A DNA stretch of 64,000 bases, taken from the sequence record PQ464590.1; one strand, given 5' to 3'. The translations under genes were made by a program, and so were the position numbers. The notes beneath the pieces were generated by a model. That model was not told where the DNA came from, ran no database searches, and saw nothing but the letters and a program-made list of their open reading frames with translations. Below, one piece after another: positions 24,857 to 52,717 of this stretch. Positions within the stretch are counted from its first letter, which is position 1. Each line of letters opens with the position of its first letter.

Positions 24857-24942
24857 TGGAGAAGATGACAGGACTCGAACCTGCGTAAACTATTCGCCTC
24901 CTGATTGGAAATCAGGTGCTCTACCAACTGAGCTACATCTTC
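24857..24942 (-). tRNA. tRNA-Gly(TCC) with long variable region
   Basis: Acceptor GAAGATG/CATCTTC, U73, CCA; anticodon stem CCTGA/TCAGG with loop TTTCCAA; T-loop TTCGAGT; 15 nt variable region. Confidence 0.85.
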
Positions 24943-38066: not shown

Positions 38067-38482
38067 TCATCCCCCAGTGCTTTTAGGCACGTATTGATTG
38101 CAGTACTGAAAAGTCGTATCATTTCGTACGGCATTATTTCACGAACCGTACTTTCCTGAAAGTGAACTTCTTCAGTTAAAGTACGATAATTCTCTTCTCT
38201 GTACGTTGGAGCATTCCACGCATCAGAACTAAATTCAATCGTGTTCTTGTTGATTCTGTATTTTTGGAACGGCTCAACATCAATATCCATAATGACTAAT
38301 TCAAAATCATCGTAATGTATATCGTACTGTAATGAGAATGAATGTATTCCAATATCATCATGATTCACAGAATGATCCCAGATACTACTGTATCTGTGCT
38401 CTTGTGTAACAAGAGCCGTATTGATTTTAGTTAGACAAAATTCAACGGTTCTTTGTAATTTTGCTAGGTGTTGTAATTCCAT
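38063..38482 (-). CDS. EEExFQxST-module family protein
   Basis: LTEEVHFQESTVREI. Confidence 0.8.
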   Translation of the reverse strand: MELQHLAKLQRTVEFCLTKINTALVTQEHRYSSIWDHSVNHDDIGIHSFSLQYDIHYDDFELVIMDIDVEPFQKYRINKNTIEFSSDAWNAPTYREENYRTLTEEVHFQESTVREIMPYEMIRLFSTAINTCLKALGDE

Positions 38483-38975
38483 TCAGTTCTCTCACAAATC
38501 TATCCATTGATGGTTTGTCCATCATAGTGTCCAGGAATAATTCTTTTTGATACACTCCCAGTACTGAGGGTGCAGAACCATTCAACTTATTATTGTATAT
38601 GTCCCGACTTAGAGCAGCTTTCGTTTTAGCTAATCGGCAAAGATTCGTGTACTTCATATATGCGTATTGAATATCATCGTAGCTGATATTTCCAATATCC
38701 TCAACTGTACTCAACTGGAATAATTCTTCTTCAGTAATATCGTACTGTATCCATACTGAACCAATACGCATAGCACGAACACGTAATTCCATTACAAATC
38801 CAAATGGAGTGAATTCACTAATGATTAGTGATCCGTCATGGCATATTTCAGTACTCTTACCAAATGACATCCTGGAACTAACGAAACCGTAAGTAGCACC
38901 AGTACTGGGGTCGAATGATTCAATCTGAGTCGAGGCAGACGTTAGCATGTCTAATAAAGCATAGCGTGTATTCAT
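38442..38975 (-). CDS. EEExFQxST-module family protein
   Basis: ITEEELFQLSTVEDI, plus C-terminal extension. Confidence 0.8.
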   Translation of the reverse strand: MNTRYALLDMLTSASTQIESFDPSTGATYGFVSSRMSFGKSTEICHDGSLIISEFTPFGFVMELRVRAMRIGSVWIQYDITEEELFQLSTVEDIGNISYDDIQYAYMKYTNLCRLAKTKAALSRDIYNNKLNGSAPSVLGVYQKELFLDTMMDKPSMDRFVRELNGITTPSKITKNR

Positions 38976-39017
38976 ATGTACCTCAAATGATAAAACCCAC
39001 ATTGAGTGGGTTTGTAT

Positions 39018-39103
39018 TGGTGGAGTGTAGGAGGACTACGTGTTACCTCCCCTACCTTGAGCATTCGCCACAGATAGTGCTTACCCGATTAGCTGTACAC
39101 CCC
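39018..39103 (-). ncRNA. 86 nt tRNA-like RNA with G3:U70 acceptor and ACCA
   Basis: GGGGTGT/ACACTCC-ACCA; D-like arm; no canonical anticodon or T loop. Confidence 0.6.
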
Positions 39104-39104
39104 G

Positions 39105-39338
39105 TTATTCTAATGTCTCTGATACGTTGATACTGTTTAGTACTACTTCTTGCCCTTCTGGGCAATTACGTTTCAGGTGATGCATCAGTACTGATTCTAC
39201 ACCGCAACTATGGTAAGTCTTGACTAAACGAGTCACTTTTTCCTGACTGTATACCTGATCTGGATTTTCTGGGTTGCGATATTCAACAACCGCCTCAACT
39301 AAAAATAGCTCGTCATTATTTGAACAGCAACAGCTCAT
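39105..39338 (-). CDS. hypothetical protein
   Basis: 77 aa. Confidence 0.7.
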   Translation of the reverse strand: MSCCCSNNDELFLVEAVVEYRNPENPDQVYSQEKVTRLVKTYHSCGVESVLMHHLKRNCPEGQEVVLNSINVSETLE

Positions 39339-39742
39339 GTTTTACTCCTGGTTACATAGGTGTCCCGTATAGTACAGAACAGTTTCATAGTATCCAAATC
39401 GATACCTGTCATATCTTGAACGGTACTCATTTGGAATAGTTCTTCTTCAGTACTAGCGTAGCTCAATTCAATCTTATTCATCGCACTGCTACTCGTGCCA
39501 CTTTCTAACCGACTGAACGTGCGGATAATAATACTATCTGGGTAAAAGTGTACATCTTTACAAAGACCGTCTGTATCTTGTGCCATATACACATTAATAC
39601 TATTCCGAAAGTACGTGATATCAAGCTTATGGATATCAACAGATTCCATGAACAAGAAATCACAACCTACTTGGAAATCATATGTTTCCTTTAGCTGATT
39701 CTTTGCACCTTCAGTAAGGATACTATTTAGAAATTCAAACAT
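39335..39742 (-). CDS. EEExFQxST-module family protein
   Basis: STEEELFQMSTVQDM. Confidence 0.8.
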   Translation of the reverse strand: MFEFLNSILTEGAKNQLKETYDFQVGCDFLFMESVDIHKLDITYFRNSINVYMAQDTDGLCKDVHFYPDSIIIRTFSRLESGTSSSAMNKIELSYASTEEELFQMSTVQDMTGIDLDTMKLFCTIRDTYVTRSKT

Positions 39743-40133
39743 ATAAGACTCTTATTTTATTCATAGTACTTATAACGTTCTCATCAAGACCAGAAATATC
39801 ATGTACAGTACTAAGTTGGAATAATTGCTCTTCCGTAATGTTGTACGGAATTTTAATCTGTTCGTCATAATGAGAATCGCCGTCGAAGTTCATCTCAACA
39901 ATAACCTCATCGTTATAGAATACAAAACTGTATCTGAATCCTGGATGCGTTGGATTGGCTGAACTTGACGTGATTTGGAACACCCGTTCATATAAATGAA
40001 CTTCACACCACGTGTGATTATTCATTGGAACATTTACAGTGTCGAACATATCACAAAGTGTTTCTTTGGATGCCGAAATCTCTTCAATGTACTCGGTTGA
40101 AAGATACGGCTCAAGTAATTCATAACGCATCAC
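39735..40133 (-). CDS. EEExFQxST-module family protein
   Basis: ITEEQLFQLSTVHDI. Confidence 0.8.
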   Translation of the reverse strand: MMRYELLEPYLSTEYIEEISASKETLCDMFDTVNVPMNNHTWCEVHLYERVFQITSSSANPTHPGFRYSFVFYNDEVIVEMNFDGDSHYDEQIKIPYNITEEQLFQLSTVHDISGLDENVISTMNKIRVLYV

Positions 40134-40543
40134 AATTCCTCTAGGTAATGGTAACGTATTTTATCAAATAACTTGATGATGTCCAGTGTTAGACCGAACG
40201 TGTTCTGTACTGTGTCCAATTGGAATAGTTCTTCTTCAGTCATGTCATATTTGACAGTGAAGATTGTACGTGCTTTCGTAACATCATCTTCTGTTCTGGA
40301 ATCCACGACAATCTTTACTACTTCTGGACGGAAAATATAATCCACGAAGAGTTCTGATTCAGACGACATGATAGGTTCACATGTGTTCAGTGATATAATA
40401 TTCGAAAATGTATCGTAGAACATACTCATGTTGTAATGAACTTGCATTCTGAATCCAGTTTGATTCGCTTTACGGTTAACCCGCTTAGTGTGGAATTCCT
40501 GGATATTGGAAGTTTTCAATAATTCATCTAAACCTTCGTACAT
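40130..40543 (-). CDS. EEExFQxST-module family protein
   Basis: MTEEELFQLDTVQNT. Confidence 0.8.
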   Translation of the reverse strand: MYEGLDELLKTSNIQEFHTKRVNRKANQTGFRMQVHYNMSMFYDTFSNIISLNTCEPIMSSESELFVDYIFRPEVVKIVVDSRTEDDVTKARTIFTVKYDMTEEELFQLDTVQNTFGLTLDIIKLFDKIRYHYLEEL

Positions 40544-40558
40544 ATGAACCTCTGAAAA

Positions 40559-40634
40559 TGGTCGAGACAGCAGGGATCGAACCTGCGACCCACGGCTTAG
40601 AAGGCCGTTGCTCTTCCGTCTGAGCTATGCCCCG
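40559..40634 (-). tRNA. tRNA-Arg(TCT)
   Basis: ACGGC-CTTCTAA-GCCGT; TTCGATC; ACCA. Confidence 0.93.
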
Positions 40635-40640
40635 AAAATA

Positions 40641-40732
40641 TGGCGGTGAGGGTGAGATTCGAACTCACGGAGGGCTATTAACCCCCGACGGTTTTCAAGA
40701 CCGTTGCAATAGGCCACTCTGCCACCTCACCG
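40641..40732 (-). tRNA. tRNA-Ser(TGA)
   Basis: ACGGT-CTTGAAA-ACCGT; long variable arm; GCCA. Confidence 0.93.
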
Positions 40733-40738
40733 TATTAA

Positions 40739-40770
40739 TATTATATCACATTTTCAGTACTTATCCCAAA
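40739..40770 (-). promoter_or_regulatory. class-2 phage promoter upstream of tRNA-Ser/Arg
   Basis: TTTGGGATAAGTACTGAAAATGTGATATAATA, identical to 52671-52702. Confidence 0.8.
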
Positions 40771-40785
40771 AATGTGATACTTTTT

Positions 40786-52461: not shown

Positions 52462-52563
52462 GGTAGCCAGTAAAGGGACTCGAACCCTTATTCCATCTCC
52501 CTTACGGGAGGGGGATCATCCAGAACACTAGGGAATTGAACCCTATAGCTTCCTGCACTGGCT
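52462..52563 (-). ncRNA. ~100 nt tRNA-like RNA with two T-loop hairpins
   Basis: AGCCAGT/ACTGGCT-ACC; TAGGG-TTCAATT-CCCTA and AAGGG-TTCGAGT-CCCTT; GNRA hairpin CTCCC-GTAA-GGGAG. Confidence 0.65.
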
Positions 52564-52572
52564 TTATGAATA

Positions 52573-52663
<91 letters not shown>

Positions 52664-52670
52664 GTACTTA

Positions 52671-52702
52671 TATTATATCACATTTTCAGTACTTATCCCA
52701 AA
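52671..52702 (-). promoter_or_regulatory. class-2 phage promoter upstream of tRNA-Ser(ACT)
   Basis: Identical to 40739-40770. Confidence 0.8.
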
Positions 52703-52717
52703 AATGTGATATTTTTT

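Follow-up and report, generated by a model that had tools for sequence, protein, structure and literature searches.

RNAs that resemble tRNA and are charged with an amino acid but decode nothing are rare to our knowledge, and those described so far, tmRNA and the tRNA-like ends of plant viruses, have been informative. Other tRNA mimics that lack an anticodon, such as mascRNA and the tRNA-like modules of bacterial and phage Y RNAs, are not aminoacylated; in the Y RNA modules the topology is circularly permuted, the acceptor stem is sealed, and the partner is Ro60. Beside its tRNA genes, bacteriophage T4 encodes small stable RNAs without an assigned function, RNAs C and D (species 1 and 2), one of which, rnaD, has a CCA end and the other, rnaC, a T-arm-like hairpin; the element that we describe here invites comparison with them.

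In bacteria, alanine identity resides in A73, G2-C71, G3.U70, G4-C69, and G20, with no element in the anticodon (PMC9976931), and alanyl-tRNA synthetase (AlaRS) charges minihelices that carry G3:U70 (PMC9976931, citing Francklyn & Schimmel 1989). Alanine minihelices and the tRNA-like 3′ ends of tymoviruses and bromoviruses are charged through acceptor-end determinants alone, with no decoding involved (PMC9976931; established literature). The minihelices are synthetic, however, and the plant-virus structures are the 3′ ends of RNA genomes, whereas our element is a free-standing gene of a DNA phage for which charging is predicted.

That gene lies in a stretch of 64,000 nucleotides, referred to as a whole as the window, which corresponds to bases 62001–126000 of Erwinia phage Hallingskeid (PQ464590.1, 366 kb), a RaK2/CBB-type jumbo myovirus (PMC11780129). 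The closest isolate to Hallingskeid is EJP2, with 59% identity in one virion protein. A preliminary description of the window had likened the element to the tRNA-like domain of a tmRNA with no mRNA domain, and had offered as conjectural roles an alanylated rescue RNA, an alanine donor, or a decoy.

Results

Architecture of the Element

The minus strand carries every gene around the element, which is the reverse complement of 39018–39103; positions inside it (p) are numbered as p = 39104 − window coordinate. The features of the locus, in window coordinates, are the following.

40559–40771, minus strand: probable start of the transcription unit (promoter scan, tRNA calls, sequence)
39105–39338, minus strand: upstream hypothetical ORF of 77 aa; a single nucleotide separates its TAA stop from G1 of the element
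39018–39103, minus strand: tRNA-shaped RNA gene of 86 nt (sequence, fold, matches of covariance model R1 in 27 loci at 54–117 bits, covariation)
39097–39103, minus strand: acceptor stem, 5′ strand GGGGUGU, with G3 at 39101; invariant in 10/10 variants
39078–39094, minus strand: D-arm with loop AAUCGGGUA (sequence, alignment, and covariation analysis)
39052–39077, minus strand: closed rod in place of an anticodon arm (fold; compensatory double changes)
39029–39051, minus strand: T-arm analogue, a 6-bp stem with an 11-nt loop (compensatory changes; 5 bp in loci L024–L026)
39035–39045, minus strand: the 11-nt loop, UAACACGUAGU, the same in 10/10 variants
39022–39028, minus strand: acceptor stem, 3′ strand ACACUCC, with the U70 equivalent at 39024; one C-to-U change in one variant
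39018–39021, minus strand: discriminator A73 and genome-encoded CCA; invariant
38986–39013, minus strand: intrinsic-terminator-like hairpin AAACCCAC / GUGGGUUU with a U run, beginning 5 nt past the CCA
38972–39064, minus strand: "hypothetical protein" of 30 aa (CDS0265) whose annotation overlaps the element (GenBank record)
38442–38975, minus strand: downstream hypothetical ORF of 177 aa, with a GAGG ribosome-binding site 3′ of the terminator

The minimum-energy fold of the 86 nt is exactly this cloverleaf, and its single-sequence folding energy is unremarkable (z = −1.7). The architecture reported in the preliminary description is borne out, with two refinements. The acceptor, GGGGUGU/ACACUCC, is a 7-bp stem with G:U at pair 3:70; A73 and CCA come after it, and a two-base linker (A and C) joins it to the D-like arm, which consists of 3 Watson-Crick pairs (G11:C25, C12:G24, and U13:A23) plus an A-A, with a 9-nt loop containing A14, G18, G19, G20, and A21. 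The stem CUAUC/GGUAG is indeed found in the anticodon position, but the 16-nt extension is not an open loop; the arm folds into a closed rod in which 6 bp are separated by a 2x2 internal loop from a further 3 bp, capped by a GAAU tetraloop. The earlier statement that there is no anticodon loop agrees with both fold and covariation. The U33-bearing 7-nt anticodon loop of a canonical tRNA is absent, and with no anticodon the element is unable to read codons. Directly adjoining the rod, with no variable loop between them, is the T-stem analogue (G53:U75 to G58:C70), which carries the 11-nt loop that had been noted in the T-loop position. The 5-bp T-stem and 7-nt T-Psi-C loop of a canonical tRNA are absent, and the 11-nt loop lacks equivalents of the C56 and Psi55 of a normal elbow. 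With this non-canonical loop and the 6-bp stem, the RNA might be poorly recognized by RNase P, by EF-Tu, or by the C-terminal domain of AlaRS.

The Locus

A sigma-70-like promoter whose −10 is extended comes first on the minus strand; next come two tRNA genes, tRNA-Ser(UGA) and tRNA-Arg(UCU), and four small ORFs lie between these and the element with its terminator. Given the promoter, tRNAs, and ORFs upstream on the same strand, the element would stand at the 3′ end of an apparent transcription unit, and we infer that all of these parts belong to one transcript. Its CCA is encoded in the DNA, as it is in 7/7 canonical tRNAs of the window. The junction between the stop of the 77-aa ORF and the element is kept across all relatives, as is the terminator hairpin, whose stem is conserved and whose loop varies. 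Searches of Pfam, PHROG, and the ESM Atlas gave no lead for the 77-aa and 177-aa neighbors.

With a stop codon directly on one side and a terminator on the other, where a transcription unit ends, the element could be a cis-acting processing or 3′-end module ("tRNA punctuation") in which RNase P recruitment and the terminator set and stabilize mRNA ends. The released RNA would then be functionless and its alanine marks a relic of an ancestral tRNA-Ala. RNase P also requires an acceptor/T stack and an RCCA end, which would explain the conserved ACCA, and the presence of several further odd tRNA-like elements in Hallingskeid fits such a module as well. We nevertheless consider this explanation, although the strongest competitor to our own reading, unlikely in view of the comparative results given below.

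The surrounding region is an array of small ORFs (window 38442–40543, minus strand). Array products of 137, 132, 135, and 177 aa have a 40–70-aa region in common and look like paralogues; none of them has a Pfam match, and their PHROG matches are weak and fall in families without an assigned function. Upstream of each of the two tRNA-Ser genes is a promoter stretch of 40 nt whose −10 is extended (TGTGATATAAT; window 40732–40771 and 52664–52703, both on the minus strand); the two stretches are almost identical and differ solely in the final few bases before the tRNA.

Relatives of the Element

When the element and its two neighbor genes were compared with the GenBank phage collection at the DNA and protein levels, Hallingskeid alone was recovered, and no relative was found in IMG/VR or the GTDB species genomes, which were searched with exact and degenerate patterns and with neighbor and structural proteins. 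Covariance model R1, built from the single Hallingskeid sequence, and model R2 found no homologue in the genomes of the four closest isolates (EJP2, Kaldavass, fENko-Kae01, and CBB), no paralogue in Hallingskeid, and no match in the T4 tRNA region; a weak model match in EJP2 sits in coding sequence and was discarded. The T4 RNAs C and D, at 119–139 nt, do not match R2 and do not have a G3:U70 cloverleaf. A degenerate-pattern scan of metagenomes returned four loci, three of them with identical 76-nt matches at 13.7 bits and the fourth without a model match. The 76-nt stretches, on JGI metagenome contigs (L010:6327–6402, L011:2349–2424, and L013:2959–3034), start with GGGGUGC, end with CUCCACCA, and have a tRNA-like D-arm but poorly paired acceptor strands; we regard them as unrelated to the element.

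Relatives came to light through the neighboring proteins. A large protein collection holds homologues of the 77-aa ORF at 97–73% identity and of the 177-aa ORF at 99–52%, and the contigs encoding them yielded 28 syntenic loci (L014–L041), all 28 of which R1 matches, with 27 whole copies and one truncated at the end of the L021 contig. The whole copies, found on metagenomic contigs of related phages, comprise 10 sequence variants that together represent one narrow clade. At every locus the element begins 1 nt past the stop of the orthologous 77-aa gene, and the same hairpin lies downstream of it. A run index shows near-identical DNA in many wastewater, sludge, soil, and landfill metagenomes. 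We mapped the reads of four public runs; two that are labelled RNA are probably DNA, and the two DNA metagenomes have no listed differences in the element, which is not significant at roughly 2% divergence.

Searching 1.8 billion representative proteins with a profile of the 177-aa family brought in phages that are more distant. Four loci of these phages (L043–L046) have the same pair of genes (75/76 aa and 168/169 aa) separated by a spacer of only about 47 nt, which contains the same terminator hairpin and ribosome-binding site without the element. Since the gene pair and the terminator are the same and the element is absent, the element is a discrete module, inserted between stop codon and terminator. 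That the terminator alone suffices at the same gene junction in these phages argues against a cis-acting 3′-end module. On the loci recovered, the family is confined to a narrow Hallingskeid-like clade, where it is kept under strong constraint.

Covariation and Constraint

In a model-fitted alignment of the 10 variants, 99.2% of the pair cells are paired and 9 of the 25 pairs show compensatory double changes; none of 500 shuffles reaches the observed values, and slid partners are about 50% paired. A structure-blind MAFFT alignment still has 96.3% of cells paired and double changes in 5 pairs. In the rod, the model-fitted alignment has double changes in 5 of the 6 pairs of the outer stem, and the inner 3-bp helix has one pair with such a change (C:G to U:A). 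The T-stem is paired in 100% of cells, with compensatory changes in three pairs (A:U/G:C swapped for G:C/A:U). The 13:23 pair of the D-stem is broken in 2 variants. An alternative fold with an 8-bp acceptor and a shifted T-stem was proposed by RNAalifold; it is possible in 8/10 variants and is the minimum-energy fold in three of the four other variants that were folded. We do not accept it as the common fold, since both the reference and the short variant mispair in it and no compensatory change accompanies it, and we take the fold with a 7-bp acceptor and a 6-bp T-stem as the common one.

The acceptor stem behaves differently from these covarying helices. It shows one change in 140 cells (G6:C67 to G:U, in one variant), with G3:U70 retained in 10/10 variants, and A73-CCA, the G:C pair that closes the 11-nt loop, and all 11 bases of that loop are invariant in 10/10. 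At loci L030 and L032 the element is 100% identical to that of Hallingskeid, whereas the flanking genes are 79–89% identical in nucleotides and, where measured, 68–80% identical at third codon positions; where third positions are near saturation (about 57% identity), the element is still 82–89% identical. The neighboring tRNA-Arg(UCU) has, in the same loci, an acceptor stem that varies through compensatory substitutions, so the frozen acceptor of the element does not result from low divergence. The pattern fits sequence-specific reading of the acceptor stem, with the identity of the RNA read there. All seven acceptor pairs are frozen and AlaRS reads four of them, which may point to a selective agent other than AlaRS.

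Three loci carry a 78-nt variant (L024:2736–2813, L025:2736–2813, and L026:908–985) in which flanking genes are only 10–15% diverged. A 7-bp stem capped by a 6-nt loop stands in place of the rod, the T-stem is rebuilt as 5 bp, with A:U and U:A as its two outer pairs as against G:C in the other variants, and positions 8–9 are UU; the acceptor stem, the ACCA, and the 11-nt loop are untouched. This variant looks like a natural domain swap. Comparison of the variants thus identifies as the selected surfaces the acceptor stem, the CCA end, and, on the coaxially stacked T-arm, the 11-nt loop, whereas the rod is free to vary in sequence and length.

These observations bear on the explanations in several ways. 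RNase P needs pairing in the acceptor, not a particular sequence, yet all seven pairs, a weak G:U among them, stay fixed in a molecule whose other stems covary, and the 11-nt loop is invariant even where both adjacent stems were replaced; neither would be expected of a cis-acting module. The constancy of that loop could instead mean that the element is a trans-acting antisense regulator on a tRNA-like scaffold, with the loop pairing to a target mRNA. Phages P1 and P7 provide a precedent in their C4 RNAs, which are RNase P-processed antisense regulators on such a scaffold. A perfect complement of the loop exists nowhere in the 366-kb phage genome except on the opposite strand of the gene itself, however, sites with one mismatch occur there at chance frequency, and Rfam gives no C4 match; we think an antisense role highly improbable.

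Gene finders and annotation might be taken to indicate that there is no RNA gene here at all, but rather a tRNA-Ala pseudogene in decay or the 30-aa protein gene of the annotation. The element is not called by ARAGORN, a search against all Rfam families at E ≤ 10 gave no match to it, and RF00005 at E ≤ 10 did not match it in the window, in the whole record, or in five relatives; over the whole phage RF00005 finds nine tRNAs above the cut-off and one weaker tRNA-like element, with the 86-nt element not among them. CDS0265, annotated across the element, is almost certainly a false gene call, because its ATG start is ATA in five variants and the variants differ in length by +1, +2, and −8 nt, which breaks any reading frame. 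Strong purifying selection and compensatory changes are not what a pseudogene would show. Both versions of this explanation are refuted by the comparative data and hardly deserve credence, and we conclude from the same alignments that the element is a true gene, not a pseudogene, and that its product is a structured RNA with a tRNA frame that does not decode.

Alanine Identity and Comparison with tmRNA

The alanine determinants singled out in the preliminary description (G3:U70, A73, and CCA) hold throughout the family. The identity set of A73, G2:C71, G3:U70, and G4:C69, in which G2:C71 and G4:C69 are minor determinants, is present in 10/10 variants, and G20 in 9/10, the short variant having A at this position. 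Because the full identity set is present and AlaRS needs no anticodon and charges minihelices, charging is to be expected, and by analogy the host AlaRS is likely to charge the element. Acceptor pairs 1–4 including G3:U70, A73, CCA, and G18 G19 G20 are common to the element and E. coli tRNA-Ala (alaX). The element stands among phage tRNA genes and has a DNA-encoded CCA. With canonical tRNAs (RF00005) it shares the 7-bp acceptor stem, the discriminator base, the CCA end, and a D-arm bearing A14, G18 G19, and A21, though with only 3 Watson-Crick pairs; unlike them it has no anticodon, no 7-nt anticodon loop, and no variable loop, and it has a 6-bp T-stem and an 11-nt loop outside the T-Psi-C consensus. 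Its lower half and T-loop have nothing in common with E. coli tRNA-Ala or tmRNA. No homologue of SmpB, peptidyl-tRNA hydrolase (Pth), a FemAB-type transferase, or AlaRS is encoded by Hallingskeid. Outside the window, the phage has a homologue of the CCA-adding tRNA nucleotidyltransferase (PQ464590.1 261954–262316, minus strand; PF01743, 72.8 bits), which lies in an open frame of 375 aa; we count its presence in favor of the reading proposed in the Discussion.

The likeness to tmRNA that had suggested a tRNA-like domain is real at the acceptor end. The tRNA-like domain of tmRNA also places an alanine-identity acceptor on an anticodon-less RNA, and E. coli tmRNA and the element have the same GGGG...CUCCACCA ends, with the first four acceptor pairs and the ACCA in common. 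The remainder differs: E. coli tmRNA has a canonical 5-bp/7-nt T-arm where the element has a 6-bp stem and an invariant 11-nt loop that is not a T-loop; the D region of tmRNA is degenerate and stemless where the element has a D-stem; and the P2 helix of tmRNA leads into pseudoknots and a tag reading frame, none of which occur in the closed 86-nt cloverleaf. With its D-stem and closed hairpin, no canonical T-arm, and no match to RF00023 at E ≤ 10, the element is not the tRNA-like domain of a tmRNA. The separate tmRNA coding piece that the preliminary description proposed to look for elsewhere in the genome is not found by RF00023 in the whole phage record, and there is no SmpB gene; over the whole phage that model returns tRNAs only, below the cut-off, and a full Rfam scan of the window likewise returns only tRNAs.

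A minimal rescue RNA of a tmRNA-like kind might still be imagined, one that works with host SmpB and EF-Tu to add alanine onto stalled chains, or that titrates SmpB and so blocks trans-translation. Alanine identity without an anticodon is what tmRNA has, and RNase P cleavage would leave the upstream mRNA near non-stop, ending 1 nt past its stop codon. The absence of a canonical T-arm tells against such a role, however, as do the D-stem and the closed rod at the site where SmpB replaces the anticodon arm, the lack of an Rfam tmRNA match, and a phage that encodes neither a tag-coding piece nor SmpB; we judge it very unlikely.

Nor does the element resemble a mimic of the Y RNA type. Its acceptor is open, formed by the 5′ and 3′ ends of the RNA and ending in ACCA, and its topology is not permuted.

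Other tRNA-like Genes of Hallingskeid

Hallingskeid has at least three more unannotated tRNA-like elements. One (window 52462–52563, minus strand) directly follows tRNA-Ser(ACU), scores 20 bits with RF00005, below the cut-off, and has two T-arm-like hairpins (GGGUUCAAUUCCC and GGGUUCGAGUCCC) within an 8-bp terminal stem, with ACC at its 3′ end. Two others lie outside the window and are not called by ARAGORN. The first (L008:377–459, minus strand; PQ464590.1 49276–49358; RF00005 37 bits) has an 11-nt loop on its anticodon stem and a 3′ end of ACCC-UUAA instead of ACCA, and is overlapped by an annotated small CDS on the opposite strand; the second (L009:379–446, minus strand; PQ464590.1 8878–8945; RF00005 33 bits) has a non-standard anticodon loop. 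Because the ACCC-UUAA 3′ end is common to these two genes, they may form a small family. Two of the called tRNAs in the window are also unusual: tRNA-Gly(UCC) (24857–24942, minus strand) has a variable region about 10 nt longer than expected, which appears as an insertion in the Rfam alignment and is unusual for a glycine tRNA, and the long-arm tRNA-Ser (52573–52663, minus strand) has the called anticodon ACU, whose A34 is unusual in bacteria and their phages.

Discussion

The selected surfaces of the element, its acceptor stem, CCA end, and invariant loop, lie on one coaxial half of the molecule, and we therefore propose that the element mimics the acceptor/T half of a tRNA. Taken as a whole, our reading is that it is a selectively maintained, non-decoding small RNA, likely alanylated, that mimics the acceptor/T half of (alanyl-)tRNA-Ala; we lean toward this reading with modest confidence. 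The RNA would come from the 3′ end of an operon whose first genes are tRNA-Ser and tRNA-Arg. RNase P would presumably cleave 1 nt past the upstream stop codon, and a trailer of roughly 30 nt containing the terminator would be trimmed back to the encoded CCA, as in the ordinary tRNAs of the phage. The mature 86-nt RNA would display the complete bacterial alanine identity set, the host AlaRS would most likely charge it, and its upper half would then present itself as (alanyl-)tRNA-Ala to a factor that reads tRNA ends.

What such a factor might be is suggested by enzymes that act at this end of tRNA. There are toxins that cleave or modify tRNA acceptor ends, one of them specific for tRNA-Ala, and defense enzymes that modify the CCA end. 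The role that we find most plausible for the element is that of a decoy or competitor, directed at some host factor or toxin whose site of action is the acceptor end. It might also donate alanine outside normal decoding, which seems to us less likely than a decoy. Both alanine donation and a minimal rescue function are weakened by the fact that the phage has no FemAB-type transferase, SmpB, or Pth. The fuller proposition, that this is a phage RNA charged by the host AlaRS and used outside decoding, either as a decoy that soaks up a host anti-phage toxin directed at the charged or CCA end of tRNA(-Ala) or as a minimal RNA that adds alanine or blocks rescue at the ribosome, dependent on SmpB or independent of it, is tentative and, on balance, doubtful.

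Whatever its partner, the element offers a compact natural tRNA mimic in a DNA phage, whose working surfaces, judging from the comparative pattern, are the acceptor end and a single loop. tRNA finders and Rfam overlook genes of this kind, and annotation pipelines place false small ORFs over them. If the RNA is alanylated, it would be a testable case of a virus using a host synthetase for a non-translational purpose, be it evasion of defense, ribosome rescue, or alanine transfer. Should it prove to act as a decoy, or to add alanine or block rescue at the ribosome, it would represent a new class of viral aminoacyl-RNA effector.
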